Shown: one piece after another, positions 1,857 through 48,821 of the stretch
How positions within the stretch are numbered: the stretch's first letter is position 1
How the letters are laid out: every line of letters starts with the position of its first letter
From: Oopsacas minuta
Lineage: Eukaryota > Animalia > Porifera
DNA: 64,000 bases
NCBI GenBank assembly: GCA_024704765.1
Contig: JAKMXF010000336.1
Coordinates: forward strand, 214,207 to 278,206
Direction: 5' to 3'
Program-made: the position numbers and the translations under genes
The notes under the pieces: model-generated
The model's database searches: none
What the model saw: only the letters and a program-made list of their open reading frames with translations
Told to the model about the DNA's origin: nothing

Positions 1857-4800
1857 TCAGTTTATCTGGTATCTCACAGCTTCATCCTGCACACTTCCAG
1901 GATAAACTTCTGCAATAAAGTTTGGATCTTTCTTTTCGATTAGTTCAGATTCTATAGCAGTTGTTTTCTTCAATTCATCAGGCTGTACTGATCCGTGCAT
2001 GTAGTTATAGATTTCATTACTATATCCAGCAGTGGGGATTTTATGGTTGTTCGTGTCTTTTGCTTTGAGTATTCTGCGCATTTTGTTGTTCTTTCTAACA
2101 AAATACAAGAATAAAACGATAAACATGAATATTAGGAAAACATTGGACACTAAAGAGATAATCATGAGAATTACTGTTGGTTGGTACCATTCAAATTGGT
2201 TTTGAGTTGACATGGCTTGTTGCGTAAATGAGGATGTCGGATCTGAAGTTTGATGTGTAGTATTTCCTAGTGTATCAACATTTGGGCAAGAATGATTATA
2301 GATCCTGATGTTGAACCCTCCTTGACAAATGAAACGATTTTCATGATAACTGCCATCTACAACGTCACATTGTATGTTGCTTTCACAATGAGTTTCATTG
2401 ATCAGCTGATGACCATACTCACAATAACATTCAAAAGAACCTATGGTATTTCGACATCCAAACTCACATCCTCCATTCGCTTCTTGACACTCATTGACAT
2501 CATCACAATCATATCTATTTGCTGCTAGCTTGTATCCTTCATCACATAAACAAAGATACGAACCTTCTGTGTTCTCGCAGGTATGCTCACAATTTGTTTT
2601 GTGATTACATTCATCGAAGTCTAGACATTCACCTGAATTGTGCAGTGAATAACCAATAGGACAATTTGTTGGCGGTTCAGTTGGTTCTGAGGGTGATGTT
2701 GGGTCAGGGAAACTATGACAATTCAGATTTGTGATTGTGAGATTGAATCCTCCTTGACAAATGAAAATATTTTCTTGATATCCACTACCATCTATCACGT
2801 CACATTGTATATTTCTTTCACAATGAGTTTCATTGATCAGCTGATGACCATGCTCACAATAACATTCAAATGAACCTATGAAATTTCTACAACCAAACTC
2901 ACAACCTCCATTCCATTCATAACACTCATTTACATCTTCACAATCATATCCATTTTGAGAAACTGTGTATCCTTCATTACATGTGCAGTAGAATGAACCT
3001 ACTGTGTTCTCACAGGCATACTCACAATTCGTTTCCTCATCGCATTCATCAAAATCTTTACATTCACCTGAATTGTGCAGTGAATAACCAATAGGACAGT
3101 TTGTTGGCGATTCAGTTGATTCTGTTGTTGAGGGTGATGTTGGGTCTGGGAAGCTATGGCAAGTCAGATTTGTGATTGTGAGATTGAATCCTCCATGACA
3201 AACGAAGCGATATTCTTCATCACCGCTACTATCTACCACGTCACATTGTATGTTGCTTTCACAATGAGTTTTGTTGATCAGCTGATGACCATCCTGACAA
3301 TAACACAGATATGAACCGATTATATTTTGACATCCAAACTCACATCCTCCATTCCCTTCCTGGCACTCGTTAATATCATCACAAGCATATCCATTAGCAG
3401 CTAAGGTGTATCCTTCATCACATACACAACGATATGAACCTTCTGTGTTCTCACAGGCGTATGCACAATCAGTTGCCTCGTTACACTCATCAAAATCTTT
3501 GCATTCACCAGAGTTGTGCAGTGAATAACCTATTGGGCAAAAGGTTGGTGGTATTGTTGACTGTGCTGTTGAAGTTGTTGACGTTGTAGTTGTAGTGCTT
3601 TGACACGTGAAGTTTGTAATTGTCAGATTGAACCCTCCTTGACAAGTGAAGTGGTTTACTTGATAACTACTACTCTCGACCACGTCACATTGAATGTCGC
3701 TCTCACAATGAGTTTGATTAATCAGCTGATGTCCGTACTCACAATAACACAGATATGAACCTATGGTATTTCTACAACCAAACTCACATCCTCCATTCCA
3801 TTCCTGGCACTCATTAGCATCTTCACAATCATATCCATTAATAGCTAGTTTGTATCCTTCTTCACATATGCAATTATATGAACCTTCTGTGTTCTGACAA
3901 GCATATGAACAATTAGTTACTTCAGTGCACTCATTGAAATCTTTGCATTCACCTGAATTATGCAATGAATAACCAATAGGACAACTAGTTGGTTGTTCTG
4001 TTGAAGGTGTTGTTGGTTCAGTGATGCTTTGACAAGTCAGATTTGTGATAGTTAAGTTGAACCCTCCTTGACAAGTGAAGCGGTTTTCTTGATAACCACT
4101 ACTATCGACCACGTCACATTGAATATCGCTCTCACAATGAGTTTCGTTATACAATCGGTGTCCTTGCTCACAGTAACATTGATATGAACCTATGGTATTC
4201 CCACAACCAAACTCACATCCTCCATTTCCTATCTTACACTCATTCACATCATCACAAACATATCCATTTGCAGCTAGCTTGTATCCTTCATCACACACAC
4301 AATGGTATGAACCTTCTGTATTCTCACAGACATGCTCGCATTCAGTTACTACATCGCATTCATCTTCATCTACACATTCTCCTGAACTATCTTGTTGATA
4401 ACCTACAGGACAACTACAAAGGTAACCATCTTGTGTATTATGACATACTTCATTACTGGGACAGGTTATGGACTTGTCAAAGCATTGATAAGATTCTGTT
4501 TGTGAGCAATTGGTATACAACAGTGGATCAGTAATAGACTTTTGGAAGAAAACGTTTGGTTCAGAACAATATCCATTACTTGTATATACCCCATATTGCG
4601 ATACAATTGACGTCCATTGTAATCTACAGTCGCAGATGAACGGGTCATTTAAATATATATTTATGCTTGGTGATTTCATTTGCTGGAATACATATGAGTC
4701 TAGAGTATGATACTCATTGAACAGTAAATATACATCTCTTAGAGATCTTGTATGTATCAGTGCTTCAATAGGGAATCCTGGATTCTCATCTAATCTCAGT

Positions 4801-5600
4801 TCTGTCAGTTCAGTTAAACCTTCGAATACATTATTTGATATAATCTTTATTCCATTATTTTGAAGATAGAGTCTTGACAGACTTGAGAGTTCACTGAATG
4901 TACCATCCTCAATAATACTTAATTTATTGTTTTCAAAGCTCAAAAGTGTTAACGAGTTCAAACCATCCAATGCTCCTTTAGTTATGCTACTGAAATCCGA
5001 GTTGTAGAAACTTAGGTGAACCAAGTTTGATAATCCTCTAACGATTGTGTTATCAAATGTACGCGTGGACGAACCTACTATTCTAATGTCGAGATAAGTT
5101 AGAAATTGTAGATTTGTGAAATATGGTGATTCTTCTGAGATACAATTACCAATGTAGATAGATTTTAGACCAGTGAAATAATTGAAAAAGTTCCCAGACT
5201 CGAGTTGGATATGATAGGCATTATCTATAACTATCCTCGTTAATCCAGTATTCTGACTTGAGGTAGTTAAACGGATATTATCTTTATCTATACCATTGTA
5301 AATGTACAACGTTTGGATATGTGAGGCTATTTCTATATCGACGATTAGATTCCCGTATACTGTTGATGTGTAGTCTTTGTAGACATATATTGTAAAAAAT
5401 GCTGTGCTCTGAACGCTACAGTAGCTTAACAAACCCTTGATAACCTGAGTTTCATTATTAGTGATGTAGCAATTGAGGTAGGAACTATAAAAATCACAAT
5501 AACCTGCTTCATTAGAGCAACTGGGAGCTTCAACCACTCCATAATAGCACAAATATGTCACCAAACCTAACAACAGAGAGATATTTCCGAACTTCCCCAT
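1857..5600 (-). CDS. Intronless type-I membrane receptor, paralog 1 (1247 aa): signal peptide, LRRs, LRRCT, EGF, 5 cbEGF-pair modules, TM, Tyr-containing tail
   Basis: Single ORF; hydrophobic N-terminus; 24-aa LxxLxLxxN repeats; DPFICDCRLQW LRRCT; D-x-D/N-E-C...NTxGSYxC calcium-binding EGF consensus; Thr/Pro linkers; TM VILMIISLVSNVFLIFMFIVLFLYF. Confidence 0.93.
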   Translation of the reverse strand: MGKFGNISLLLGLVTYLCYYGVVEAPSCSNEAGYCDFYSSYLNCYITNNETQVIKGLLSYCSVQSTAFFTIYVYKDYTSTVYGNLIVDIEIASHIQTLYIYNGIDKDNIRLTTSSQNTGLTRIVIDNAYHIQLESGNFFNYFTGLKSIYIGNCISEESPYFTNLQFLTYLDIRIVGSSTRTFDNTIVRGLSNLVHLSFYNSDFSSITKGALDGLNSLTLLSFENNKLSIIEDGTFSELSSLSRLYLQNNGIKIISNNVFEGLTELTELRLDENPGFPIEALIHTRSLRDVYLLFNEYHTLDSYVFQQMKSPSINIYLNDPFICDCRLQWTSIVSQYGVYTSNGYCSEPNVFFQKSITDPLLYTNCSQTESYQCFDKSITCPSNEVCHNTQDGYLCSCPVGYQQDSSGECVDEDECDVVTECEHVCENTEGSYHCVCDEGYKLAANGYVCDDVNECKIGNGGCEFGCGNTIGSYQCYCEQGHRLYNETHCESDIQCDVVDSSGYQENRFTCQGGFNLTITNLTCQSITEPTTPSTEQPTSCPIGYSLHNSGECKDFNECTEVTNCSYACQNTEGSYNCICEEGYKLAINGYDCEDANECQEWNGGCEFGCRNTIGSYLCYCEYGHQLINQTHCESDIQCDVVESSSYQVNHFTCQGGFNLTITNFTCQSTTTTTSTTSTAQSTIPPTFCPIGYSLHNSGECKDFDECNEATDCAYACENTEGSYRCVCDEGYTLAANGYACDDINECQEGNGGCEFGCQNIIGSYLCYCQDGHQLINKTHCESNIQCDVVDSSGDEEYRFVCHGGFNLTITNLTCHSFPDPTSPSTTESTESPTNCPIGYSLHNSGECKDFDECDEETNCEYACENTVGSFYCTCNEGYTVSQNGYDCEDVNECYEWNGGCEFGCRNFIGSFECYCEHGHQLINETHCERNIQCDVIDGSGYQENIFICQGGFNLTITNLNCHSFPDPTSPSEPTEPPTNCPIGYSLHNSGECLDFDECNHKTNCEHTCENTEGSYLCLCDEGYKLAANRYDCDDVNECQEANGGCEFGCRNTIGSFECYCEYGHQLINETHCESNIQCDVVDGSYHENRFICQGGFNIRIYNHSCPNVDTLGNTTHQTSDPTSSFTQQAMSTQNQFEWYQPTVILMIISLVSNVFLIFMFIVLFLYFVRKNNKMRRILKAKDTNNHKIPTAGYSNEIYNYMHGSVQPDELKKTTAIESELIEKKDPNFIAEVYPGSVQDEAVRYQIN

Positions 5601-12395: not shown

Positions 12396-15300
12396 ATGGG
12401 AAGAGAATTTCTTTTCCCTAGAAATTGGTCTTATTTATACTATTTCCTATTTCTGGTGCTCTTATCAAGCGTCACAACTCAGGATACAGTGCTAGAGCCT
12501 CCTCTTGGTGATAGGAGCAAGGAGAGAATGGTCGAGGTATGTAGTCTTTTGTATTTTTATTATTTGAAGTGGAACCTGAGTGCAGGTGAATTTGAATTGT
12601 TTACCTCATTCATTATATACACATCGTAGAGGCCTTCCGGATTATACAGGTGTCGAATTATGCAGGTGCACCTTCGAGATTTGAGCTCGGTACATAATGT
12701 TTTCGGCATTTTTCGCATCATATATTTGACTTTTGGCAGTATTTTAATTCATCAGCTGCCATAAACTGTGAATACATGAGTAATATTAAGCATCTCGTAA
12801 TTGTAATTTAGAGCTACAGTGGAGTCTCCGAATAACGGACACGTTGGGGATATTGCTTCTGCCCACTGTAGATAATTGTCCGCTCATCGGAGACCGCTTA
12901 AGTATTAATTACATGTTTGGAAAATTCAATCCCTGCGGCGAGGTTTGTCCGCTTTCCGGAGTGTCCGTTTTGGGAGACTCCACTGTACAATAGATAGTGT
13001 ATTTGTGAGATCCGGTGGCACTACCCAGACCTCACAAGTTTGGATTTATTATTGTTTTCCCTCTACAAGTGTTATTTTCATCACAGGTCCCTACTCCCTA
13101 TTCCCTATCTTTCGTCAGATTGGATGAATCTCTGAGTCCTAGAATTTACTGATGGGAGTAAAATTCTATATTATACCAAGGTTTCAATCGAATAATATTT
13201 GGCGAATAGTTCAATATTTGGTTACCAAGCGAATATCATTATCAGTATTTGATTAGGCAACTATTCATTAATACTCATACTCGGTTCGATCGGTTTCAAC
13301 CTTGAATTATGCGTATTTTCATATGATTAATCATGTCAGATAATTTGGCGAAACGTCCATAGACATTTTGTTCCTGATTTCACCCATAAATCAGAATGAG
13401 AACATTCTAAGTGTCAAAGTTGTTATAATAAAAACTACAAATACTGAATCGTAACTTGTCTCAATTGTTATATATCCATGGTACATTCATGTCTAGTATC
13501 GTTTCAATAGCCAAATTCTATTCAATATGTTAGATTTGTATATTATCAAATAATTCGTTCAGTCCACTCTTCTAAGATATATTTCGACTATAATTTTATA
13601 GTCTATTGGGCCACTGTTAGTTGGAAACATGTTTCAGCTCCACTGCCCGTATCTGATTTGGATACCGTACTAATGTTGTCATTATTTCACGATTTACTCA
13701 ATGTATAATCAACTACAAGGTGTATAAACTGGCTAGAGTACAATAGAAGTATCATTTCATAATCTAACCTATTCTCATATCAAATTTGACTTTAGTTATT
13801 ATAAAATTTTCTATGAATGAAATGCATGTTCAGCTGGATTTAATGTGGAGCTGGAACAAGTTTCTCGTTAACAGTGGCCTTATTGCTGACGAATTGATGT
13901 ATTCAAATCATGAATTACTCAAAAGAAATGAAGAGATCGAATAAAACGATTTTTCGTGGGTACTCCAGGATTGAAACCTGACCAACCGTACCGTCTCCTA
14001 CGGCCATGAGATAGGCGGACTGAGATAGAAATTTAGCGACAGCTGTTTCTGTCCCTTCCATGAACTTTGTGGACACATCACTGTTAACACTGGGAATTAC
14101 CCAATGTCAAAGAAATCCAGCACTGTGTCCAGAGATTTGATTAACCAAAGGTTGGAAGATATGAATGCGTACGCGTACCAATGATAAAGCGATACAGTAA
14201 GCTGAACTGATAAGACGTACTACTTCTTTCTACTATTAAATTCAGTCCCCATTCATTATGGTAGTCCCAATTTTGGTAAGACGTACAAGTCTTATCTGAG
14301 TTCCACTGTACTTCAATTACGTTCAATTGCTCTATTCTAAAAATATGTTACAGTAAAGGTATTGGGTACATTTTTGGCGAACGCAACGATCAGAAGATCT
14401 CAACCTTGGGGTTACACTAAATCTCCAAATCATTACATCTCTACTCGCCAACTTATTTCCATTTTAGGATAATATATAAACTTTCCATATTTATTATAAG
14501 ACGACAAACAAAGTTCATTTGAACAGATATACCTTATTTTTAGAAAAAAGAATTTGCATATTTGTATAGTATAATAGAGATATCTGTGTGCAATAACAAT
14601 TGTGAATTACTTGTGAATATATGTAAATTCTTATTGTATATATAACTATCCTTACTTTCAATTTCCCAGGAAAATTGCTTAGTTCATTTACTGGATTGTA
14701 CAATATTATGTTATTCATTTAGTGTCAGGTTTCTGCTTATAATTCTAAGAGACATTCCATACCACATCCTTCGTTGCTAGGAAATTTATAGTTTTTTAAG
14801 AATGCCAGATTTTGGTTTGTTTGCTGCTGGATTTCTTAGGTGCTGGTTGATTCATTTATAGAGAAATTTCAAAATGCTACACGTATATATATAACGTTAA
14901 TTTTGATAATTTAATATAATAAATAGAATAAATAGAATAATAAAATGGATTTTGAGACAACTTATTTCCAACCAATTTCTCAATATCTTCCAACACTTTA
15001 CTCACTACCAATGGGGCCTAAAATCTCAAATTTTTCGTCCCCAGCTATGGAAACAAAATTGAAAAAGTGTATGGCACTTAAAGGCCTGTTGATTGACGGT
15101 TGGAATACGAAATTCCACAAATCGCCGTTCATTTCTCTACTCGATTCGCATAAAGTCGCATTTTGTATTGCAGTCCAGGATTTGAATCGAATTTTACAAG
15201 AAAGCGTGTTCACCGACACAGAAAGGAAACGTATTAAGAAACTGCGTTATCAAGGTCGGAACAATAAGGCTGCACAGACTCTACGTATCAAGAACAAACG

Positions 15301-18300
15301 TCGGGAAAATGCCTTGTCATACTCTGTGTATCAACTTGAAAAAGCAAGAATTTCATTGAGTATAGAGAAAGAACAATTAACTTCGGAAATATGTTTCTAC
15401 CAAAAGGCATTATCAACTTCATCCAATTAGTTTAATAATTATATCGTACATATATTTCTGTTATTTTCATATTTACTCACCCTGCTGGACAGGTTTATTG
15501 AGTTATTTGCATGTTTTTCCTTTTATTAAACAATTCCTGCACCTTTAACTATGTTTACACTATTGACCTCATCAACTGGGGCCTATTTAGATATACTTTC
15601 GAGGTTTCCTTTCTGGCCAAGTAACCTGATAATTGACATATATTTAGTGGAACTTCATTAGTACGAACACATTTAATACGAATTTCGGAACAATAGAACA
15701 AATATTTACACAAATTCAGGTCCCTACAATAGTTATTCAAGTGATATTGCTCCTGTCAAGAAGTACTAAATTTAAAGGTCCACTCGTGTACGTATTACAG
15801 AGGTTCTACTGAATCAGGTCATTTCTGGTATATCTCGAGTATCTGTTTGAATTTCACATGGATTTATTTATGAGGGGAATTCCCTGAATGAAATGTCAGT
15901 TCACTGCTGTCACGAAAAGTATTGTAATCTAATTTCTTATTCATACAAAGTATAATATTGAATTTACACAATTAACAAATACAGTGAACCTTCAGTAAGT
16001 GAACACCCCGGGGGCCAGCCAAAGTGTTCACATACGAGAGGTGTTCTCTTTTCGTGACATCGTGCGTAGCAATGGAAAAAATTTGGGACCGAGAAAAGGT
16101 GTTTATCTTTTCGAGGTTTTACTGTATTTACAGTGAGTAACACCAACTTACATTTTACATGGCATCAGTAATTACAGTATCCCATAGATAACAGTATAAC
16201 CTCAAATTCCTAGTTTCATACACATGAGCCTATACAAAAGGGAATTGGGTAGACAGAGAGAATCGGAGTCGCATCTTTTGGCCTTCCTGGCACCCCATTT
16301 ACATTTCTCGGGAGTCCTGATATTTATATCGATATCCCCGATTTTCATAAATTTCCCTGCATTTCTAATTTTATTCGCAAATAATATGAATTTTCACTAT
16401 TTTGTCCGCTGCGAGAAATATCCAATATTTTTGAATGTACAAAATATCCCTGATATAATCTAAAACCCGGGACAATCCACGGATCCAGGGAAGGTTGGAA
16501 AGTGTACGTTTGTGAGGTTGCACTGCAGTAGCTCCCATTGAGGGCGATCACAACTTGATAATCGCCCCGAGAAAATCTCAAACATTTCGTTACGCTATTC
16601 CCTCTCTTATCTAGGCTACCAGCACTTGTGGATTAACAGGTTCAGAAACATACTGTAGGTTTCTAGGTCCTTCTCAACCTGATTCAGTATCTCTTGCTCC
16701 TGAATGTAATATTGATAACTGTGATAATACATGTCCTCATGGAAATACCTCTCCAACTCCCATTATGATTGAAATAGGTAAGTGTGTATGTTAGACGTCA
16801 CAAGCACGGCACAGGTCGTTCGGGCTTCTGGCTGTCTGGCCGGGTCAGGGGTAGTCCCAAGATCTGGCATTCCTGCGACAAATGCCTCGTCAGGCCTGGG
16901 GTTAGAGTAATATGTGATTGTAATTGTAATAGTAACGATTACAATTTGAAAGGTAATTGTAATATTGCAATTGATCTTATTGTGCAGCAATATTTAACTG
17001 TTCCAGCTTCTCAGCTCCAGTAGAGAGACTTTTAGTATAGCTGGTTAATTCTTTCGAACTGATAGGTGTTCCCTAAGCCTAAGTGATGAGGTATTTCAGA
17101 AACTCATCACTGTCAAATCCAATGCGGGTTTATAAAAACTGATTTGAGTTTTTGCATACAAAATCTATCATTTTGTATTAACACTCGTCAAATCCAAACG
17201 TGACAGCTTTTCACTAATCCGAACGAATTATCTTGCAATTTCTGTTCGGATTAGCGAAGGTATACTATATATTGTATGTACAATTTAACCATATATTATT
17301 ATTCCACGAGGCTCAATATTACAAACAGACACGCCTGCTCCAGGACAATCAGGAACCTCTCTGATGTTTTCTGGTGAATCAGATAGTTTTATATCTCATA
17401 GTAATATACCTGTTATAGATGATAATACAGGTTTCTCATTCTCTTCATGGTTTAGAGTTGATTCTGGGAATATTAATGGGTAATTTAATTGTTGGGAATA
17501 TTATATTGTATGTTGTATGTATGTATGTATGTATGTATGTATGTATGTATGTATGTATGTATGTATGTATGTATGTATGTATGTATGTATGTATGTATGT
17601 ATGTATGTATGTATGTATGTATGTATGTATGTATGTATGTATGTATGTATGTATGTATGTATTGTATGTATGTATGTATGTATGTATGTATGTATGTATG
17701 TATGTATGTATGTATGTATTGTGTATGTATGTATGTATGTATGTATGTATGTATGTATGTATGTATGTATGTATGTATGTATGTATGTATGTATGTATGT
17801 ATGTATGTATGTATGTATGTTTGTTTGTTTGTTTGTTTATTTGTTTGTTTTTATGTGTGCTTGCTCGCTTGCTTGCTTGCTTGTTTAGCATTTACTTGTC
17901 GTATGTTGACTGTTGTTTTTTTGTTGGTTTGACTGTTATCTATGTTTGTTATTCTCCCAATTTCCCTAATATTTGTATCTACAGAATAATTATATCACGA
18001 GGAAATGATGACATAGATTCAGAGGAAATATTCCACATACGCGTTTCTGGCACATCTCTATACATTTCCTATATCCCATTAACCAGTAATACAGCTTCAG
18101 AAATTCAAATTCCATCTTTCGTTATCGTATCCAACGTATGGTATCATATATCTGTAGCAATATACCAAGAGGACGTATCTGTATATGTGAATGGAGCTAT
18201 ACAGTATGCTACGTCACTTATTGCTGATATTAAGGGACCTGCTGGTGTATTGTATCTGGGAAGAGGTGTTGATGGTGAGCAAACACGACCCGTTCAAGCG

Positions 18301-21300
18301 TTTTCTAATTATTAGAGTAGCTCCTATAGGGAGATGCCATAATTGCATGGAGGATATGACTTCCATACGTCCGTCCACGCAGCCGTGCTAAATCTAGCAG
18401 TCCTATTAACACCAAATTGGCATTACAGTATCATCATGTTTTTCGTACTCTAGGGTCAAGCGTTTTACCCAATCGGTTCATTCCAGACCGCCGTGGGTCT
18501 GGTCGGGACTGATTATCTAGTTTAGAATTGTTTGGGTCACCTGTTAATCGGGTCAAAATGATCTGGTCCCGAAATGATTTTATCAAATGGAGTATGCGTA
18601 TATACGTACTGTAATTAAATAAAGTTGTCTCTCATTGAACTCTGAAAACCAATTAAATTTTCCTGTTTTGTGAATTGTAATAATACTTCTAATGGACTAC
18701 TATAATGTATTCAAATTTCTCAATGATTTGTATTAACGGATATCTTTCAACATATCAATTCAATTCTAGAATTATTCAAGCTGACAAATTGAAGCTGGTG
18801 ATCAAATTGTGGATGTTTGACAAACTCAACAATGATTAAGCTAAATTATCCTAAGATTATTTAGCGAACTTTTGATCTTTGACTCAATATAATTGTCTTT
18901 TTTTCCTAGATTTCTTACCCAATCTTGTTTAGAACGTTTACCCGTGTATCATCTGATTTCTATTGAATAATAATTTGAGACAGATTAATTCTTAAAATTC
19001 CCTTTCAATTTGGGGATTTTGAATATGGTAATTTGTTGAAAGTATTCTAATGAGAAATCGACTACTTTTGCGTTTAATATATTGTGGTTTATTGAGATTG
19101 TATTATTTGAATTGCAATATATTTCTTAATGAATATGGGAAATTTCTAATTATTGATCAAAGTAATGAATATGATTGTTGATTATTAAAATGTTTCCTTA
19201 GAAAGATATTTATTATTATGACCATATATAGGAATATTTGATACAAATATCAATTTTAGGTTCTAACAGTTTTAAGGGAAATTTGGATGTTCCAGCTTAT
19301 TATACACAAGCGATAACTCAAAGGTAATTTGAAATAATTTTTCCTGTCTTATACGTATTTAACAAATCTGGCAATTGAACACTTCCTTCAGGACATTTCT
19401 GTGCTCGGATATTTCGTCCACAATGGCATCATTTATTTCACACCATGTTTGTAGTTTGTTTTTATTGTGCTAATTATTCCAGACGAAATGTTATGTTGGT
19501 GCTAAGAAATATCCGAGATGAAGTTCCGGTGACTGTGCGCTCTCCATTCTCCAATATTCTGGGGCGTAATTTGAGATCCCAGAGCGAGAAGGCAAGGATG
19601 GATATTTGCCTCAATATAATGGGGATTACAATAGGAAGATGGGGTAACATCCGAAAAAGCGAGGCAACTGTCTCCTCTGCCTCAATCGTAGTTACACCCC
19701 AGCTAATCTGTCCATTTTATAGCTCGCTATTAATTTTAAAGAGTATATACTCTTTAGTCTTTTTATCTTATGAAAATTTGGGGATTGAAACTACCGTATT
19801 GCAACACTTATTATTTCCTCACTTTTTGTTGACCCAATTATGTATGATAATTTGTAAATTTTGCCGAAAATTTCATCAAAACATTTTCTTGTGTGTGCTA
19901 ATAAATTTGTATTTACAAGTCTTGGAGCGTTTTTTCTAGCCCCGAGCGCTTATTTTAGGAAATACGTTATGATACTATTATTTAATAACTGAATTCTCAT
20001 TTTCGGATCTTTTTCACAATTCCTCTTTCAAAACATTTCAATATTTATTTCACATTGATGCTCCTTGTATAGAGAAGCATATGAAGTACATTCAGGATCT
20101 CTCTCCTTCCTTCATCTCTCACCAAATTGCAGATGTCCTCCCTCACACCCTGTTGTATCACTCACAACACCCTCATTATGTACCCAACATCCTGGATTAA
20201 CCACAGACAGAGGGAATAATAACAGACTGAATACAGATGCACATCCTCCAAGCTACTCTAATGATAATTTTACTAATTCATATTGGCTGTCTTCGCCTGG
20301 TGATAGGATGCTTAATATTACTTATGTACTCAGTGATAAACTCATTGAGGTTTGTGATTATTCTTCACATTAAGACAAGCCGCTTCACTTGCTCGTGCTG
20401 CGCGGCTTGCGAACACTTTGTGTTCGAATGGGACTCGACACTTCGTGCCTCGAGTTTAGCAAAGTCTAAAATTGCAAAATTGAATAAATTACTTAATATT
20501 AACACGATGAGTACATAGTTATGCGACATCTCAGAATTGATAAATTCGAATCTAATACAACATTCCACAAATCCTTTCCTTGGCAACGGACAAACAGACA
20601 GACAAAAATAACAACTTTTCCCTCTTAAGAGTGAAGTTACGAAATTTATCTACACGTTAATCATACCTTTGTGTTATACCATGTGTTTATATCCGAACTA
20701 ACAGCATATGTATATATACATCATATACAGGAGAATTTTAGGACCCCTCTGGAGGCTACTATTCAAGGATTCCCCTGAGGGATCCAAAAATTCCCTCCAA
20801 AACATGATATATCCTCGCTTTTGCCACTAGCATTCCTTGACCTAGCACGAATATTGAATATTCGAATATTCGAAAGTTACCATTTCAAATATTTGTTCCG
20901 GTCATTTTGCTCATAATATCGAACAAACAATTCGTAACTGTCCAACTATAATTTCCCATTTCTTTAGGTTCTTTTCATTCTCGCGGAATTCAGAAGTCCT
21001 AGACCTCAATCAATTGTTTTACTAAAATCCTCAGATGATGGCAATACATTTACTCCATTACAATATTTCTCTAGTGATTGTATGGGAGATTTTGGGCTCA
21101 TGGCTGGTGCTGATATTACTTCTCCTTCTGATGCTGTCTGTGTTGATACTTACTCTCTGTAAGTATTGAATATTACCACTTGATAACATACAAGAAAACA
21201 GATAGATAAATAAACAAACAAACAAACAAATATAGAAATAACTAAACTAACTAACAAATAAGGAAATAAACAAGAATTTTCTATTTCCAATTTATTTTAT

Positions 21301-30300: not shown

Positions 30301-33300
30301 TCAGCTTAGGGATGCACCAGACATCTAAGCATGTCCATTTCTGAGTAATAATGTAAGAATCATCAACTGGTTTAAGTATAAATTCGCTAGAATACATTTC
30401 TGATATCATTCAGTAGCGTATCTATGAATTTCTGATTTGAAGGGTGCTATTAATCGCGAGTTAATTGGTTTTCAACTCTAGACAATAAGAAAGGGACACC
30501 AAATATATTTATCGTAACATGGGAACAAGATATTTCAAGCAATCCTAGTTAGTGTTTGTCATGAAAATCTGTTGTAACTATATGATTAATACATCTTTTT
30601 TGTAATTTTCAATATTTCAAAACATTTTTTTCCCGTGACAGTTCGAATTAACAGTGGTGGCCTCATTTATGCGAATATATGAGTAAATTTAATTCTTCAC
30701 TTTAGTGTATGCTAATTTTCCTCTAATCTCATAGGTCTCAAACCCTTCACAGAATACAGTTTCACCCTACAAGTATGCACTAATACAGGTTGTACTAACA
30801 GCTCCGTATCTAATATAACTACACTACAAGATGTTCCTGAACAGGTATCTACACCTCTTGCTTCTTCTATCTTCTCAGATTCCCTACAGTTATCATGGTC
30901 ACCCCCCACACAACCTAATGGTATTATTATCGCTTACGAAGTGTTTCAAAGGCAATCACCATTCACTGGACCAAGTGTCTCTATTGACAGTCTTTCTGGT
31001 AGTGAATTGAGTGTGTCTGTTACAGGACTCAATGCATTTACTGAGTATGAGTTTGCTGTATTAGCTTCTACTATTATTGGGGGTAATTTAAGCGAGAATG
31101 TTAGAATCAGGACATCTGAAGCTGGTAAGTTAAGAGTCACATGAACTTATTTTAGCTGTATATGGCATATAGGTATCTGAATATATCTACTGGCTGGAGT
31201 GCCCTATATCTCATTGTATTTTGATGTTATTATAAGAAATTCATTTCTTGATCAAAAATATTTCAACGTTTTTAGGCTTTGTCCATCTGATTGCTTTCAA
31301 GAATTTTTATCTCATTGTTTCATGACGTCCTCACCAGCTAACAATTTTCTTGGTCATTGGGACTAGAATGTGAAAAATATTATTTAAAATTTATGGTTGA
31401 GTTGAAATTATGAAATAATAGTGTGAATTGTACTTAAATATCGCCAATAGTCGTGTTGTAGCTAAAATTGGAAATTGGAAATCAAACTGAACCAATTTCT
31501 AACTAAAAACGGTATGAGAAATGAATTCTCTGTAGCTAGGGAAATTTGCTATACTGTAGAACCTCTTTAATACATACACCAAGGGACCGTCGAGATTTGT
31601 ACTCCTTATCCAGAGTACGTATTAACGAGGTTTCACTGTAATTCCATAAATTTCCTACTTTCAATACCAAATTTTTTATCTTTATAGCGCCAACTGAGAT
31701 TCAAGACCCTATCCTAACAGTACTAGGCGCTATGTCTGTACAGATATCATGGCAAAATCCTACAACACCAAATGCAGATTCAATAATCCACCATATTATT
31801 CGAACTAGCCCGCTACCCATGTCTGTTATTGTCAGTTCTACTAATACTGGGTCTTTCATTTTACCCAATCTACAGCCTTTCACTATGTATTCATTTCTAT
31901 TACAAGTATGTAATGTTGCAGGTTGTGGCAATAGTTCAGCTGTAACCATAACAACGGATGAGCATAGTAAGTATGCATTATTTTATATTACATTATAACA
32001 TGCATTATCCTGCACTTTTTTACTCGACAGTGTTTCTGATTTGAAATTGCTTCCGACTATTTAATTCACGTTCACACCCCGACACAATGGTCAGGTCCAA
32101 ACGAGTGTGTCGGGTTGTGCAGGTTTCACTATCCGTTGTAAAAATACCAGTTAATGTTTTGTATTATGTCTATATACTGGAAATGATTAAAATGTACAGT
32201 AAAAACAGTGTGAAAAAGTGTACGATCAAAATATTTTTTTGCCAACATGCACTAGAAAACCCCATTACGACTGTGTATAAAGATCGATGAAATTTTTATT
32301 CATGATTATTTTTCTAGCTCCTTCAGGCCAATCACCTCCTATCATCATATCCTCATATCCTAACAACATATCTCTAGGATGGGATCCACCATCTCTACCC
32401 AATGGCATAATTACGTCATACACTTTATCTAGACGTCTACCATCTCTAACACTATCTTCGCAACTAATTCATGAGAAAGGATTCCGTTTTCATGGAGGAG
32501 GTTATGCTAGATTTCCAACAGGCTCTTTCAATCCTGGGTTTTCAACTTCCATAGGTCTTCGTATACGTACTTTTAGTACAGACGGCTTGATAATGCTCCT
32601 GTCCACAGCCAGTATGTATGATTACATAGCGATTTCATTTAATAGCACTGCAGTACAGTTTGCATTCGATTCTGGTACCAATTCATTGACAAACATCCTC
32701 GTACTGAATGTAGCTATTAATGATGGTGCTTGGCATGACATAGCTGCTACCCGTATTGGTAACGAGGGTGGATTAAGTATAGATAGCAGTTTTAGTGTCG
32801 GGAAAACTGTTGCTGGATCTGATAATGACATTGCACAGAGTTCTATTGCTTTTGTGGGTGGAGTTGATGCGGATTTTGTATTTCCTGATGTTTTCCCTGT
32901 TCTGAGTGTGCATAGTATTGCTGGTTGTGTTCGTGATATGGAATTTAATTCTGAATTTGTTGATTTTGATTCTATAGAGAGTTCAGGACAGTTTGATTTG
33001 ACGCTTGCTGGTTGTCCTGTCGATATCGAGCAAGGTACGCATTACTCTGGTGCAGGTTTCGCGAAATTTGACGCTTCTAATGCTGAGATCAACGGTGAAT
33101 CATTTGATATTTCATTCGAGCTTAAAACAATAGAAAGTACCAGCATAATATTAGCATTAGGACTGGATTCAGCTACTCAATCGAGTGATTATATACTTTT
33201 CACAATCGCAGATTCTTTCCCAATGATAGATTTCCAAATTGACGGAGTGAAAGGCTCAATTTTATTTATTGAAACTACCATAGATATCTGCGATGGAAAA

Positions 33301-36300
33301 TGGCATTCATTTTCCCTGCAAAAAACCGCAACACGAATTTTAATGGTAGTTGATGAGGAGTCAAATCCCATTCCATTAGCTATGATAATCCAGATGGATA
33401 CAATATATTTTGGTGGTTTAGACGTGTTGTCGCCTTTTTATACTAAACTCGAGGCTGAATCCTTATTAGCGCCTAATTTCGGTGGATGTATACGCGGGCT
33501 ACAGCTGGATGGTGTTGAATTGGATTATTCATATGCAAGTGAAATATGGAATGTAGATATTGATGGTTGTCCTACTGTGTCTGTTGGGAGCTGTACTGCT
33601 GCTGGTATCAATGATTTAACTAGTGGAGATGTATTGAGTTATACAAATACTGGATTGATGGAATTTAGAGGTATTTTTTGACGGATTTTCATTATTTTCG
33701 TGTGAACTATAGGCTCTCGTTATATGCACATCAATAGGCTGTTGAATTCATACTTCATATAAGGAGTGTGATTAATAGTGTTCAACAAGCTGGTGGTTTG
33801 TTGGCGTTAGCCACCGAGATTCATTGCTTGCTGGCAGGGGCGCCTAACTTTGTAACAAATTTAACGGTACAGATGGTTGCTCACACATATTTTTTGTATT
33901 AGCTCTTTAGGGCTATAACCAAACGAGGAGGCTCGAGCCTCAAGCCCCCTCGGGTTCGGCGCTTGTGCTGGCTTAGTTATCCCACCATCTAATTTTTGTT
34001 TTTTCGAACACTAGTGCTTAATTGCTTATGGTATTTGGTTAAGATATCCAGCACACGCGAATCCTGGATTATATTTCATTGCCTTGTAAAAAACAATTTC
34101 CAAGGTTGAAACCGATCAAACTGAATATCAGTATTCATGTATAGCAACATAACCAAATACTAATAATATTCGGTTTGGGCCAACCAAATACAGAATATTG
34201 AACTATTCGCTTGCAACCTTGACAATTTCCTAGTTATTCATATATATATTTGCGAAATTTTGATGTAGCCTCTATGTCTATGGGAGTACGTGTACAAATG
34301 ATCTACAAATATTTATTTTTTGTATTTCCAGTGCTAACGAGAGTCTAATCTAGTTTGCAGCAATCAATGAATTTGCTTATATATTTATCTCTTATAGAAT
34401 ATTACTATAGAGTTAGTAGTCAAAACAGTGCTGGATTTGGTGTTAGTAATTGGCAGAGAGCTAATACACAACAAGGAGGTAAGTAGTTGTTTTAATGTTA
34501 TTGGTGTACTTTTGTATTCGTACTCAGCTTTTAGTTACGTCATTCCTAGATTAATAATGTATAACAAGTTGTAATACCCTGAGAAATTTCTAGTGGAAAC
34601 TGCTATACTGCCTCTAATTGAATACAATGTTTGCATTGTATGATTGCATACAGCGTATAGTTGCCGATGCCTATAGCTCGATAAATCATCTATTTAACTA
34701 ATTTCAATATTCAGAGCCTGAGGCGTAACTAGAGATCCTAGAGCTAGGAGGGAAGGATGGATATTTGCCTCAATAATGGCGATTACAATAGGGAGATGAG
34801 GTAACGCCCGAAAAAGCAATTGTCTCCTCTGCCTCAATGCTAGTTACGCCCTAGAGAGCATGGTGGATGATATTCTTTCTGTGAAACACTATATATACAC
34901 GTACTTCGGAGACCTAAATACTCTCATACGATTTTCCACAAATCCAAACCCGTGATTCTAATCAATTCATATACTATTTCCAACATCTGTGCTAATGTGT
35001 ATAATGTCTTTTCTTAGTATCATCTCCACCTTCAAACCTTCAGTTAACAGCACTCAGTACTTCTATTCAAGTTAGTTGGGATGCTCCTACAACTCTAAAT
35101 GGAGTAATAGACATGTATTTTATCACAACACTATTGAATGGTAAGTCTTGTATTAATGTACAGGTAATGCGTAGCTCGGGGTCACAGAGGTCACATGCCC
35201 CCTGGCCAAGATTTAATAAATTAAAATTTCTTACAAATATCAATATGGATTACTAAAACGAGCAAAATTGAAGATAACACCTTCAAGCTATTGGTGGTAA
35301 AGAATTACTTCGTTATGTTATACCGGATATTATTGTTTATTGCTAACTGTTCTCTTTTAGCGCTTTTTAACCCTAAATTTGTCCATGTTTTTCAGTGTCC
35401 ACACTCGACATACTCCCAGTTGGGCGGGTGCCTCTCCCTTCTCCTCTCTACTCCTGTTATATAGAACGGATACTTCGAAATACCGCTTTTATATTGAAGT
35501 CTGAAATTGTACAAACGTGGTCTAAAGCCTATCATAGAATTCATTGGTTATATCAAAGTAATTATTACACTTCCTTGGGTTCGATATAACAGGAGTTGCC
35601 TGTTCTCCTCCTCCTTTATCAATTTCTTTAACATCTTTTATTTAACTCCATATAGGGAATATCGTATCACAAGATAGTGTACCAGATACTCAGTTACAAC
35701 TTGATGTACAGGGTCTATCGCCATTCACCAATTATACTATCTCATTAGCTGTTCAGTTGACTACTGGAGTATTATCTGATTCAGTTACTGATACAGTTAC
35801 TACGCTAGAAGATGGTAATTATGCCTATAACCTTGAAATTAGCCGAGTTATGCCACATTCCTTATAACTTGTATAATTCTCTAGTTCCATCTAATGTAAT
35901 TCCTCCCAATCCTGTGAGTGTTACGTCACGCGATGCTACCATATCCTGGCAGCCTCCGAATCAACCTAATGGCCTGATAACAAGCTACAGTATATTATCA
36001 CTATCTCCTACTCAAGATACACTATATGTAGGGAATAGTAATGTATTCGCTACAACTTTATTGAATTTATCACCATTCACTGAGTATCAAATTCTTCTGA
36101 GAGCTTGTACTGTTATTGGGTGTGCTGATAGTGAAGCTGTAATATTCACAACGGATGAAGATATTCCTGAAAGTGAGTAGAGTTGGATTTGCTTCAAAAT
36201 GTTACTCTCAATATTGGTCTATTACTCTATTTCAATTTTCACTTATTATAGGGGAAAAGTGTACTATCACAATTTCCCTATTAGTCTCTTCAACCGCCGT

Positions 36301-42192: not shown

Positions 42193-45100
42193 TCAGTTTA
42201 TCTGGTATCTCACAGCTTCATCCTGCACACTTCCTGGATAAACTTCTGCAATAAGGTTTGGATCTTTCTTTTCGATTAGTTCAGATTCTATAGCAGTTGT
42301 TTTCTTCAATTCATCAGGCTGTGCTGATCCGTGGATGCTGTTATAGATTTCATTACTATATCCAGCTGTGGGGATTCTATGGTTGTTCGTGTCTTTTGCT
42401 TTGGGAATCCCTTGTAGTTTGTTAACCTTTCTAACAAAATACAAGAATAATGCTATAAACATGAATATTAGGAAAACATTGGACACTAAAGAGATAACCA
42501 TGAGAATTACTGTTGGTTGGTACCATTCAAATTGGTTTTGAGTTGACATGGCTCGTGGCGTAAATGAGGATGTCGGATCTGAAGTTTGATGCGTGGTATT
42601 TCCTAGTGTATCAACATTGGGGCAAGAAAAATTCTGGATAGTGATGTTGAATCCTCCTTGACAAATGAAACGATTTTCGTGATAACTGCTATCAACCACA
42701 TCACATTGTATGTTGCTTTCACAATGAGTTTTGTTGATCAGCTGATGACCATCTTGACAATAACACAGATATGAACCGATTATATTTTGACATCCAAACT
42801 CACATCCTCCATTCCCTTCCTGGCACTCGTTAATATCATCACAAGCATATCCATTAGCAGCTACAGTGTATCCTTCATCACATGCACAACGATATGAACC
42901 TTCTGTGTTCTCACAGGCGTATGCACAATCAGTTGCCTCGTTACACTCATCAAAATCTTTGCATTCACCAGAATTGTGCAGTGAATATCCTATCGGACAA
43001 AAGGTTGGTGGTATTGTTGACTGTGCTGTTGAAGTTTTTGGCATTGTAATTGCAGTGCTTTGACAAGTGAAGTTTGTAATTGTCAGATTGAACCCACCAT
43101 CACAAATGAATTGATATTCTTCATTGTTACTACTATCAATCACGTCACATTGAATATCGCTCTCACAATGGGTTTGATTAATCAGCTGATGTCCGTACTC
43201 GCAATAACACAGATATGAACCTATGGTATTTCTACAACCAAACTCACATCCTCCATTCCATTCTTGGCACTCATTAGCATCTTCACAATCATATCCATTA
43301 ATAGCTAGTTTGTATCCTTCTTCACATATGCAATTATATGAACCTTCTGTGTTCTGACAAGCATATGAACAATTAGTTACTTCAGTGCACTCATTGAAAT
43401 CTTTGCATTCACCTGAATTATGCAATGAATAACCAATGGGACAACTAGTTGGTTGTTCTGTTGAAGGTGTTGTTTGTTTAGTGATGCTTTGACAAGTCAG
43501 ATTTGTGATAGTTAGGTTGAAACCTCCTTGACAAGTGAAGCGGTTTTCTTGATGACCACTACTATCGACCACGTCACATTGAATGTCGCTCTCACAATGC
43601 GTTTGATTAATCAGCTGATGTCCGTACTCGCAATAGCACAGATATGAACCTATGGTATTTCTACAACCAAACTCACATCCTCCATTCCATTCCTGGCACT
43701 CATTCGCTTCTTCACAATCATATCCATTAATAGCTAGCTTGTATCCTTCTTCACATATGCAACTGTATGAACCTTCTGTATTCTGACAGGCATATGTACA
43801 GTTAGTCACCTCATCACATTCATCGAAATCTTTACATTCACCAGAATTGTGTAGTGAATACCCAATGGGACAACTAGTTGGTTGTTCTGTTGAAGGTGTT
43901 GTTGGTTCAGTGATGCTGTGACAAGTCAGATTTGTGATAGTTAGGTTGAAACCTCCTTGACAAGTGAAGCGGTTTTCTTGATAACCACTACTATCGACCA
44001 CGTCACATTGAATATCGCTCTCACAATGAGTTTCGTTATACAATTGGTGTCCTTGCTCACAGTAACATTGATACGAACCTATGGTATTACCACAACCAAA
44101 CTCACATCCTCCATTTCCGACCTTACATTCATTAACATCATCACAAACATATCCATTTGCAGCTAGCTTGTATCCTTCATCACACACACAATGGTATGAA
44201 CCTTCTGTGTTCTCACAGGTATGCTCGCATTCAGTTACTACATCACATTCATCTTCATCCACACATTCTCCTGAACTATGTTGTAGATAACCTATAGGGC
44301 AACCACACAAGTAACTATCTTGTGTATTATGACATACTTGATTACTAGGACAGGTTATCAATTTGTCAAAGCATTGATAAGATTCTGTTTGTGAGCAATT
44401 GGCATACAACAGTGGATCAGTAATAGACTTTTGGAAGAAAACGTTTGGTTCAGAACAATACCCATTACTTATATATACCCCATATTGCGATACCATTGAC
44501 GTCCATTGTAATCTACAGTCGCAGATGAACGGGTCGCTTAAATATAGATATATGCTGCTTGGTGATTTCATTTGCTGGAATACATACGGGTCTAGGGTAT
44601 GATACTCATTGTACTGCAAGAGTACATACCTTAGAGATCTTGTATTTATCAGTGCTTCAATAGGGAATCCTGGATTCTCATCTAAATTCAGGTATGTCAG
44701 TTCAGTTAAACCTTCGAAAACATTATTTGATATAATCTTTATTCCATTGTTTTGAAGATAGAGTTGTAACAGGCTTGAGAGTTCATTGAATGTACCATCC
44801 TCAATGATACCTAACTTATTGTTTTGAAGATAGAGAGATAGCAGACTTGAGAGTTCATTGAATGTACCATCTTCAATAATACTTAATTTGTTGTTTGCAA
44901 AGCTCAGATATGTTAACGAGTTCAAACCATCCAATGCTCCTTTAGTTATGCTACTGAAATCCGAGTTGTAGAAATTTAGGTAAACCAAGTTTGATAATTC
45001 TCTAACTATTGTGTTATCAAATGTACGCGTGGACGCACCTACTATTCTAACGCTGAGAGAACTTAGATATTGAAGATTTGTAAACGATGGTGTTTCTTTT

Positions 45101-45564
45101 GAAATACAATAACCCAAGTAGATATATTTTAGACCTGTGAAGTAATTGAAAAAGTTTTTAGCCTCGAGCTGGATATGATAGCTACTACTAACAGATATCC
45201 TCGTTAATCCAGTATTTTGGCTAGATGTAGTTAGACGGATATTATCTCGATCTTCGTAATTGTAAATGCGTAAATATTGGATATTTGAGGCTAATTCTAT
45301 ATCAATGATTAGGTTCCCGTATACTGTTGATACGTAGTTTTTGTAGACATATATTGTAGAAAATACTGTACTCTGACCGCTACAGTAGCTTAACAAACTC
45401 TTGATGACCTGAGTTTCATTATTAGTGATGTAGCACTGTAGATAGCTACTACCATAATTACAATACCCTGCTCCATTAGAGCAATCGACAGCTTCAACCA
45501 CTCCATAATAATACAAATATGTCACCAAACCTAACAACAGGCATATATTACCGAACTTCCCCAT
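42193..45564 (-). CDS. LRR-cbEGF type-I receptor, paralog 2 (1123 aa): one extra 24-aa LRR, 4 EGF modules
   Basis: Intact ORF; tandem NNKLSIIEDGTFNELSSL / NNKLGIIEDGTFNELSSL LRR duplication; same architecture as 1857-5600. Confidence 0.93.
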   Translation of the reverse strand: MGKFGNICLLLGLVTYLYYYGVVEAVDCSNGAGYCNYGSSYLQCYITNNETQVIKSLLSYCSGQSTVFSTIYVYKNYVSTVYGNLIIDIELASNIQYLRIYNYEDRDNIRLTTSSQNTGLTRISVSSSYHIQLEAKNFFNYFTGLKYIYLGYCISKETPSFTNLQYLSSLSVRIVGASTRTFDNTIVRELSNLVYLNFYNSDFSSITKGALDGLNSLTYLSFANNKLSIIEDGTFNELSSLLSLYLQNNKLGIIEDGTFNELSSLLQLYLQNNGIKIISNNVFEGLTELTYLNLDENPGFPIEALINTRSLRYVLLQYNEYHTLDPYVFQQMKSPSSIYLYLSDPFICDCRLQWTSMVSQYGVYISNGYCSEPNVFFQKSITDPLLYANCSQTESYQCFDKLITCPSNQVCHNTQDSYLCGCPIGYLQHSSGECVDEDECDVVTECEHTCENTEGSYHCVCDEGYKLAANGYVCDDVNECKVGNGGCEFGCGNTIGSYQCYCEQGHQLYNETHCESDIQCDVVDSSGYQENRFTCQGGFNLTITNLTCHSITEPTTPSTEQPTSCPIGYSLHNSGECKDFDECDEVTNCTYACQNTEGSYSCICEEGYKLAINGYDCEEANECQEWNGGCEFGCRNTIGSYLCYCEYGHQLINQTHCESDIQCDVVDSSGHQENRFTCQGGFNLTITNLTCQSITKQTTPSTEQPTSCPIGYSLHNSGECKDFNECTEVTNCSYACQNTEGSYNCICEEGYKLAINGYDCEDANECQEWNGGCEFGCRNTIGSYLCYCEYGHQLINQTHCESDIQCDVIDSSNNEEYQFICDGGFNLTITNFTCQSTAITMPKTSTAQSTIPPTFCPIGYSLHNSGECKDFDECNEATDCAYACENTEGSYRCACDEGYTVAANGYACDDINECQEGNGGCEFGCQNIIGSYLCYCQDGHQLINKTHCESNIQCDVVDSSYHENRFICQGGFNITIQNFSCPNVDTLGNTTHQTSDPTSSFTPRAMSTQNQFEWYQPTVILMVISLVSNVFLIFMFIALFLYFVRKVNKLQGIPKAKDTNNHRIPTAGYSNEIYNSIHGSAQPDELKKTTAIESELIEKKDPNLIAEVYPGSVQDEAVRYQIN

Positions 45565-47440: not shown

Positions 47441-48821
47441 CTGAGGACAAATCGGTAGAGGCGGTGGATTGCAGCAATTTACTGTTATTATAATAGTTTG
47501 TATCTTGAGTGTTTCCTTTACAATAATGATACGGGATTGATTAGAATTCTGTTAAAGAATTGCAGTATCCTGAACACTGCGATAGACTACATGATGTGTA
47601 TAAACACTATTATCCACCAACATATGGCCATTTAATCATTGATATTGACTTACCTACAAGTATTCATACAATATTTGGTCAGAACGTTGGGTTAAATTGG
47701 TTAACCAGTTTTGCACATGTTGTATTCGAATCGCAAAACTTTTTCAACAACTTTCAAGTTCTCCAGCATATATACATGAGCAATCTTATTCTAAAATAGA
47801 CACAATAGTTCACGAATCTAGAATATCTGAACATTTTCGAAAGTTTACATGATTTGACATCATTAGACATATCTGAGAGTCCAGAGTTTTCTATTATAAC
47901 ACTGCTACATGCAAGATCTCTCGATATTCTATACTTACAATAGTTATAGAACGCTTCACTCGTGTATATTCCAACAAATGAATTCATTAAGATATCTGTG
48001 TCCGGATAATCCATTTACTATGGAGTAATTCGATCCATCAATTTATCACAAATCCATAACTATATTCAAATTGCTTCATTCATGCAAATAATACGAATGA
48101 TGAGAGTTTGCCATCTTTAGCTTCTATTGATATTGATATAGATCGTAAATTTGAACTCAGCGAACTATCAGGTATCATGATGGGGAAGCTTATAAGAGGC
48201 ATATTCGTTATACTTCTAATTATTCTAGGTTGTGTGTGTATAATATCTGGTATTATTCCAAGTTCTCAATATTTGTCAGTAAATATACTAATCAATACAA
48301 GTATGTTCAGTACTTGTAATAGTTTCGAATTTGATACAGGTAGCATTACTAATAGGAGAAGATGTATAAATTTGTATCTGTTGGCAGTTAGTTTGTTTGG
48401 AATTGTTTCAACAGTTATTGCATGTTTAAGAGGTAGTGAAAAGAAATATGTGAATATTATTGTAGCCTTGTTGAGATTCTTGGTGATGTGTTAGATGGTA
48501 TTTTTCGCAATATTTATCATTGGGAGATAATTGTAAAGTAATGAGAAAATTGATACAGATTTCGTGACAAAATTTGAATTCAATAAAGGTATGCTCGTCT
48601 TGTCCACGTTTTGCACTACTTTTTGCTTACTAATATTTATTCCAGACTTCACCCATGACATTGCTAGAAAGTCGATAATTGCTCCAGTGATGATTATATC
48701 ATTCATAACAGTACTGATATAGATTATCATATACACTGTCGTATTAGCATTTTCTTATGGTAATGATATACATCAAAAACAGTGTAATACAGCTCCAACC
48801 TTACACTGTTGGGAATCATAG
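47441..48821 (+). pseudogene. Diverged LRR paralog relic continuing in frame into a multi-pass membrane region
   Basis: Manual translation: VEAVDCSN..CYYNSLYLECFLYNNDTGLIRILLKNCS / VYKHYYPPTYGHLIIDIDLP / HVVFESQNFFNNF / NIFESLHDLTSLDISESPEFSIITLLHARSLDILYLQ / IFQQMNSLRYLCPDNPF / FITNP*LYSNC, each matching the receptor N-terminal region in order. It then continues in the same frame into about 5 hydrophobic segments (48190-48760) with four further in-frame stops. Confidence 0.78.

Follow-up and report, generated by a model that had tools for sequence, protein, structure and literature searches.

Variation among tandem leucine-rich repeat receptors of the glass sponge Oopsacas minuta is concentrated on the concave strands of their LRR domain

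In this study, we analysed a stretch of 64,000 nucleotides of the Oopsacas minuta genome (contig JAKMXF010000336.1, positions 214,207 to 278,206; hereafter the window), which carries four paralogous receptor genes, named R1 to R4. Each gene is one complete, stop-free, single-exon open reading frame (ORF) on the minus strand, and the four products share a plan composed of a 25-residue signal peptide, a Cys-capped leucine-rich repeat (LRR) domain of 10–11 repeats, an LRRCT with a CDC motif, a variable number of calcium-binding EGF (cbEGF) modules, one transmembrane (TM) segment and a tail of ~80–100 residues without a Pfam domain. Variation among the paralogs is concentrated on the strand positions of the LRR domain, the ratio of nonsynonymous to synonymous substitution rates (dN/dS) exceeds 1 at the core of these strands in two sponge species, as is characteristic of rapidly evolving recognition receptors, and the paralogs recombine. 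R1 to R4 are thus likely to be germline-encoded type I receptors in which a fixed LRR scaffold presents a concave face that has been diversified by duplication, exchange between paralogs and selection. Jawless vertebrates, echinoderms, molluscs and plants are known to possess diversifying LRR receptors; full-text literature searches returned neither a description of this receptor family nor one of diversifying LRR receptors in glass sponges, and the Oopsacas and Aphrocallistes genome papers make no mention of the family.

Variation and probable selection on the LRR strands

A sequence-only reading of the window had proposed that the differences between the four receptors fall on exposed strand positions of the interval 4640–5540, which corresponds to R1 residues 21–320 (LRRNT through the tenth LRR), and all five sets of example strings that it quoted are present as written in R1 to R4. 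The LxxLxLxxN motif alone served to define the site classes, before variation was counted: positions x2, x3, x5, x7 and x8 were taken as concave (49 codons), with x3, x5 and x7 as the core and x2 and x8 as the edge. Among the four window genes, 33 of the 49 concave columns (67%) are variable as opposed to 61 of 251 (24%) elsewhere in the domain (Fisher p = 1.4e-8), in agreement with the proposed near-fixed scaffold and changing strand positions; outside the concave set, variable columns make up 9/40 of the scaffold L/N positions and 52/211 of the remaining domain. The same distribution is seen in 11 close paralogs (42/49 concave columns versus 118/251 elsewhere; Fisher p = 2.9e-7), where the mean number of different residues is 4.0 at x3, 4.1 at x5 and 3.4 at x7, and each paralog possesses a unique combination of strand residues. 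As to the residues said to be exchanged, core positions are indeed enriched in Tyr (29.5%, a 5.4-fold excess over the remaining positions), Arg (12.5%, 6-fold) and Ser (15.8%, 1.4-fold), but not in Asp (5.2% versus 5.1% in the rest).

An AlphaFold2 model of R1 residues 26–400, built on 64 family sequences, displayed a mean pLDDT (predicted local confidence) of 92.3 and a pTM (predicted template-modelling score) of 0.90, and the strands assigned to it by DSSP coincide with x3-L4-x5 in 10/10 motif-annotated repeats. Its Foldseek neighbours include LRRTM2, the Nogo receptor, FLRT, Toll and a hybrid of Toll-like receptor (TLR) 4 with a variable lymphocyte receptor (VLR), at 15–21% identity.

Pairwise dN/dS was estimated by the Nei–Gojobori method (NG86) over 11 paralogs (55 pairs pooled, with bootstrap intervals), an approach which takes dN and dS from the same codons and does not depend on a tree. 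Core codons yielded a dN/dS of 1.97 (bootstrap 1.28–3.76) and non-concave codons 0.42, with a dS of 0.236 at the core and 0.225 elsewhere. Maximum likelihood (ML) estimates were obtained with our own implementation of the GY94+F3x4 codon model, the log-likelihood of which under M0 matches that of IQ-TREE (-4568.49). With the fixed site classes, dN/dS in the 11 paralogs was 3.06 at the core, 0.74 at the edge and 0.52 in the rest, and a likelihood-ratio test against a core value of 1 on a single tree returned a doubled log-likelihood difference (2dlnL) of 88. Where four segment-specific trees were used, with IQ-TREE branch lengths scaled per segment, the values were 2.95, 0.75 and 0.50, and constraining the core to 1 costs 2dlnL = 73.5. 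For the four window genes by themselves, ML placed the core at 2.5–2.7 on all three topologies and the rest at 0.42–0.43 (p <= 8e-6); by NG86, their non-concave codons stand at 0.35, a background which the concave and core values exceed about three-fold.

Without prior labels, model M2a was favoured over M1a (2dlnL = 123) with 10.6% of sites at a dN/dS of 4.3, and 11 of the 22 sites with a posterior above 0.9 lie within the 49 a-priori concave codons (p = 1.5e-5). The selected sites beyond this set include residues 38 and 43 in the LRRNT strand, residue 103 in the loop that follows strand b, and residues 341, 344 and 360 in the LRRCT. The sequence-only reading had also named an even spread of substitutions over all surfaces as an outcome that would speak against it; in the regular repeats, motif-exposed convex and loop positions display a dN/dS of 0.26–0.45 and the concave core of the same repeats 2.0–2.1, indicating that exposure alone does not explain the pattern.

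Relatives of the four receptors were identified in a second sponge through ENA assemblies, which contain ~70 of them at ~55% identity, the genes being again arranged in tandem arrays. Their neighbour genes in that species, CWC25 and an F-box LRR gene, are 72–76% identical to adjacent genes on the Oopsacas contig C340, where the latter adjoin further family members, which marks the second species as another glass sponge, related to Oopsacas and syntenic with it at this cluster. Column entropy, taken over 50 paralogs of this sponge, reaches 2.52 bits at the core versus 1.10 elsewhere (p = 2e-16), with the columns of an LRRCT patch (R1 residues 339–360) likewise of high entropy. NG86 on the 11 second-sponge genes for which DNA was at hand gave a core dN/dS of 3.38 (2.08–6.07) versus 0.55, and M2a identified 29 selected sites, 21 of which are concave (p = 7e-15). 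The two species have eight selected sites in common (38, 43, 99, 124, 195, 243, 289 and 341; p = 7e-5), among them LRRCT site 341, and this recurrence of selected sites makes the signal unusually clean. The outcome of a dN/dS at or below 1 at concave positions, which would likewise have spoken against the proposed focus on the concave face, was thus encountered at the strand core in neither the 11-paralog set nor the second species. If a receptor under diversifying selection is defined operationally by a dN/dS above 1 at the binding face and not elsewhere, both of these gene sets belong to that class, as do the four window genes alone when judged by ML, albeit with NG86 intervals that include 1.

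Recombination, the membrane segment and the tail

The pairwise homoplasy index (PHI) was significant whether all informative sites or third codon positions alone were considered (p <= 0.001), and trees of separate segments disagree with one another. The paralogs therefore exchange sequence, and likelihood ratios based on a single tree are inflated; the conservative estimates are those of NG86, which needs no tree and draws both dN and dS from the same codons. The TM segment and tail, which had been described as near-invariant, are so among R1 to R4, with a dN of 0.017 in the TM segment (dS 0.093, dN/dS 0.18) and of 0.083 in the tail (dN/dS 0.72). The dS of these two parts is 0.09–0.12 as compared to 0.22–0.32 in the LRR region, i.e. 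about half or less; given this low dS and the tail dN/dS of 0.72, the near-invariance of the tail does not chiefly reflect strong constraint, and that of both parts is due in part to recent common ancestry or homogenisation.

Such exchange could in principle produce the excess of nonsynonymous change by itself, in that conversion lowers dS, older strand codons that escaped conversion then mimic an excess of dN, and single-tree models overstate selection. The detected recombination, the halved dS of TM segment and tail and the finding that ML with a shared dS exceeds NG86 with a local dS are all in keeping with this explanation. It is nevertheless very improbable, as the tree-free, same-codon NG86 ratios still lie well above 1 in both species, dS at the core equals that elsewhere in the 11-gene set, and segment-specific trees shift the ML estimate only from 3.06 to 2.95; furthermore, the holding of differences against conversion would itself constitute selection that maintains diversity.

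Towards the end of the tail, a Yxx[LMIV] motif was present within the last nine residues in 23 of 40 family tails versus 2.5 expected from shuffled sequences, often after acidic residues. A recurrent C-terminus of the family is EPYPG-x-Q-D/E-x(3-4)-Y-x-N/T-L/M (e.g. YANLK, YENMK, DYQTL and YMNV), with two tyrosines 11 residues apart. In receptors of the hemITAM/ITAM type, the tail carries an acidic stretch and YxxL/I, which is read by a Syk-family kinase with tandem SH2 domains. The genome contains at least 56 SH2 matches. No Syk-like partner emerged from the two tandem-SH2 ORFs inspected, which are non-kinases, one of them a caspase-SH2 protein; an ORF of 632 aa at 4579–6477 of contig C151 joins a caspase (Peptidase_C14) domain and three SH2 stretches in an unusual architecture.

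Several observations weigh against the interpretation of R1 to R4 as receptors with a selectively diversified concave face. In the four window genes the NG86 core value is 1.29 (0.70–2.85) and thus not significantly above 1, and that of all concave positions, with dS from the same codons, is 1.06 (0.60–2.04). In Oopsacas the dN/dS of the edge (x2 and x8) does not exceed 1, and half of the M2a sites fall outside the concave set as defined beforehand. Two assumptions enter the ML tests, namely a synonymous rate common to all site classes and trees with which recombination is in partial conflict, and the surface mapping is based on the motif and DSSP, not on the three-dimensional coordinates of the model. 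Additionally, the tails of R1, R2 and R4 end in YQIN and not in the Yxx[LM] of the family.

The four-gene NG86 values, with their intervals including 1, would be expected if the concave residues merely drift at a dN/dS of ~1 in redundant paralogs, or on a face without function, under relaxed constraint and no selection for change; signs of gene birth and death, namely a decayed fragment at 47471–47986 and a paralog that lacks the family start codon (both described below), point the same way. We consider drift of this kind improbable, since the bootstrap intervals exclude 1 in both the 11 Oopsacas paralogs and the second species, convex exposed positions remain at 0.26–0.45, all ORFs are intact and the same selected sites recur in both species; moreover, an enrichment of Tyr (5-fold) and Arg (6-fold) at the core is not expected from drift.

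The receptor genes of the window and their wider family

R1 (1857–5600, minus strand) encodes an intronless type I receptor of 1247 aa, as deduced from its ORF and translation and from Pfam matches to LRR_8, EGF_CA, cEGF and FXa_inhibition. It is laid out as a signal peptide, LRRNT, 10 LRRs, LRRCT, cbEGF modules, TM segment and a tail of 80 aa. Matches to LRR_8/LRR_4 in a capped solenoid that follows a signal peptide and precedes a single TM segment mark the protein as an extracellular LRR receptor of type I, and repeated EGF_CA/cEGF modules (EGF_CA in 10 stretches, E = 1.1e-57) mark the EGF part as calcium-binding. The LRRNT and LRR solenoid, with the hypervariable x3/x5/x7 strand positions, occupy 4626–5525 (residues 26–325), while the LRRCT and linker at 4401–4625 (residues 326–400) hold a second variable patch at residues 339–360. 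The TM segment at 2100–2177 (residues 1142–1167) is formed by the hydrophobic run TVILMIISLVSNVFLIFMFIVLFLYF, and the cytoplasmic tail at 1860–2099, which is without a Pfam domain, carries the Tyr motifs IYNYM, YPGS and RYQIN; all of these parts are on the minus strand.

The remaining receptor genes of the window are likewise on the minus strand. R2 (42193–45564) encodes a paralog of 1123 aa with one extra LRR, an additional repeat of exactly 24 residues (IIEDGTFNELSSLLSLYLQNNKLG) at residues 229–252 (44809–44880, minus strand). The extra LRR is a recent internal duplication, so that the paralogs differ in repeat number as well as in residues. R4 (58047–62234) encodes a paralog of 1395 aa with the most EGF modules of the four. 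R3 (49640–51379) encodes a short paralog of 579 aa with one cbEGF pair, a TM segment and a shortened tail; the sequence after the cbEGF pair passes straight into the TM segment (…CEQGQLTVILMII…), and the tail is without the last eight residues. This short form looks like the result of an in-frame internal deletion. Between R2 and R3, tblastn detected a decayed LRR-domain fragment, the relic of a further paralog, in four pieces at 47471–47986 (plus strand), which are 36–50% identical to R1 residues 6–42, 48–142 and 232–285.

ORFs with Laminin G domains are situated between the receptor genes (32287–33681, plus strand, E = 5.6e-28; 17419–18315, plus strand, weak), as is a bZIP_Maf-like ORF; the plus-strand ORFs listed here are 14945–15430, 17419–18315 and 32287–33681. 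The Laminin G and bZIP_Maf-like ORFs probably belong, as exons, to multi-exon genes.

At least 11 close paralogs are present in Oopsacas in two tandem arrays, nine having been located on the contig of the window (C336) and neighbouring DNA and three on C340, and the 61.5-Mb genome contains at least 55 matches to the LRR domain. NCBI entries of Oopsacas minuta that are close to these proteins bear the names 'fibrillin-like' or 'SCUBE-like'. One close paralog (C340:216378–217571) is without an ATG at the family start position, and a match at C336:192758–193237 spans 161 residues, contains a stop codon and adjoins a run of N; these two may be pseudogenes or assembly gaps. Tandem duplication, decay and sequence exchange all occur among the paralogs. 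Identity is 73–82% within the main group of each species and ~55% between the two sponges, which indicates that expansion or homogenisation took place separately in each lineage.

Only four sequencing runs contain the stretch, in the form of contigs of one sample; these also cover intergenic DNA and the runs are thus DNA, with a depth over residues 165–400 that is inflated by paralogs overlying each other. A Logan contig of a further relative (P0031) was considered as a possible transcript; it has no poly(A) and so provides no transcript evidence.

Possible roles and comparison with known systems

In the mechanism that we propose, the concave beta-sheet, joined by the LRRNT strand and the LRRCT patch, would form a variable binding surface on a fixed solenoid scaffold. 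Each paralog would acquire its own Tyr/Ser/Arg-rich surface through duplication, through exchange with other paralogs and through selection that favours new or different residues at x3, x5 and x7. The cbEGF modules would act as a stalk of variable length, and the short tail with its tyrosine motifs would probably pass the output on to SH2-type or sorting machinery. The concave face would bind the ligand, and the ligands would vary or evolve, be they microbes, food particles or conspecific tissue, while signalling through the tail tyrosines is proposed with more reserve.

Recognition of conspecifics instead of microbes, whether as allorecognition, as an adhesion code of cells or syncytia or as gamete recognition, is possible, if on the unlikely side. 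The nearest solved folds (LRRTM2, FLRT and Nogo receptor) are adhesion and guidance LRR proteins, and stalks of cbEGF modules are a common feature of matrix and adhesion proteins. Three second-sponge contigs of ENA ERZ25069837 (105x, 82x and 113x) carry blocks of 94–98.6% identity, including a non-LRR gene, which flank strongly differing receptor genes; these are haplotypes whose receptor alleles have diverged widely, or else the products of a recent segmental duplication. As haplotypes they would accord with a role in conspecific recognition, but segmental duplication fits the contig comparison equally well, and the present data do not separate classes of ligand. A wider proposal, which we regard as unlikely, is that the family represents the main variable recognition system of glass sponges: a germline LRR-cbEGF repertoire whose Tyr/Ser/Arg-rich concave faces are re-sorted by exchange between tandem paralogs and kept different by selection, and which serves to discriminate microbes or to recognise foreign tissue in a syncytial animal, with signalling through a conserved C-terminal acidic-Yxx[LM] motif. 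To our knowledge, no TLR-type receptors are recognised in glass sponges. Were the proposal true, it would amount to an independent invention of LRR-based variable receptors early in animal evolution, in a syncytial, filter-feeding and early-branching lineage. The recognition biology of glass sponges is almost uncharted, and the family supplies candidate genes for the telling apart of microbes or foreign tissue as well as defined residues for binding experiments, namely x3, x5 and x7 of the ten repeats and the LRRNT and LRRCT patches.

The receptors with a diversified concave face described here belong to none of the VLR, TLR, nucleotide-binding LRR (NLR), plant Cf-type or Slit families. The likeness to VLRs, TLRs and NLRs put forward in the sequence-only reading stands as an analogy, based on the variable concave face, and fails as an assignment, since the genes are germline-complete and lack TIR and NB-ARC domains and cassettes. 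Pfam scans of R1 and R3 identified no TIR domain, and the proteins are thus not Toll-like receptors; no NB-ARC/NACHT domain was identified in Pfam scans, and since a signal peptide and TM segment are present they are not NLRs. When the LRR domain was searched by tblastn against the 64 kb (E <= 1) for donor cassettes of the VLR kind, only the four genes and the one decayed fragment were returned. Lamprey and hagfish VLRs resemble R1 to R4 in the LRRNT-LRR-LRRCT solenoid, the variable concave strands and LRRCT patch and the Tyr-rich binding positions, a resemblance that is functional only; a VLR gene is incomplete in the germline, is put together in somatic cells with cassettes from its flanks and encodes a GPI-anchored or secreted protein, whereas R1 to R4 are complete single-exon genes for TM-anchored proteins with cbEGF modules. 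The TLR expansions of sea urchin, bivalves and amphioxus are similarly large, tandem, often intronless and diversifying in LRR residues, but the sponge receptors differ from these in having no TIR domain, a single short LRR domain with both caps and a cbEGF stalk.

LRRTM2, FLRT2/3 and the Nogo receptor are the best structural matches (TM-score 0.5–0.7, Foldseek E 1e-8 to 1e-7) and have type I topology in common with R1 to R4; their low sequence identity, their status as conserved single-copy genes as opposed to diversifying arrays, and their lack of cbEGF modules set them apart. Slit similarly combines a capped LRR domain with subsequent EGF repeats, yet is secreted and possesses four LRR domains, LamG and a C-terminal cystine knot; the sponge proteins have one LRR domain and a TM segment, with no LamG or CTCK found by Pfam in the ORF, and the LamG ORFs near R1 to R4 are separate genes on the other strand.

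By analogy, the closest system in its working may be that of the plant Cf-type LRR receptor-like proteins, ahead of VLRs and expanded TLRs. The tomato Cf-4/Cf-9 (Hcr9) proteins consist of an LRR ectodomain, a single TM segment and a short tail without kinase, their genes stand in tandem arrays and exchange sequence with one another, and positive selection acts on the solvent-exposed x residues of xxLxLxx. For signalling, plant receptor-like proteins depend on partner kinases (SOBIR1/BAK1) that sponges are not expected to possess, and the Cf/Hcr9 proteins differ from R1 to R4 in their unrelated lineage, their other LRR subtype and the lack of a cbEGF stalk; the two systems are alike in ectodomain, TM segment, kinase-less tail, arrays, exchange and selected x residues.

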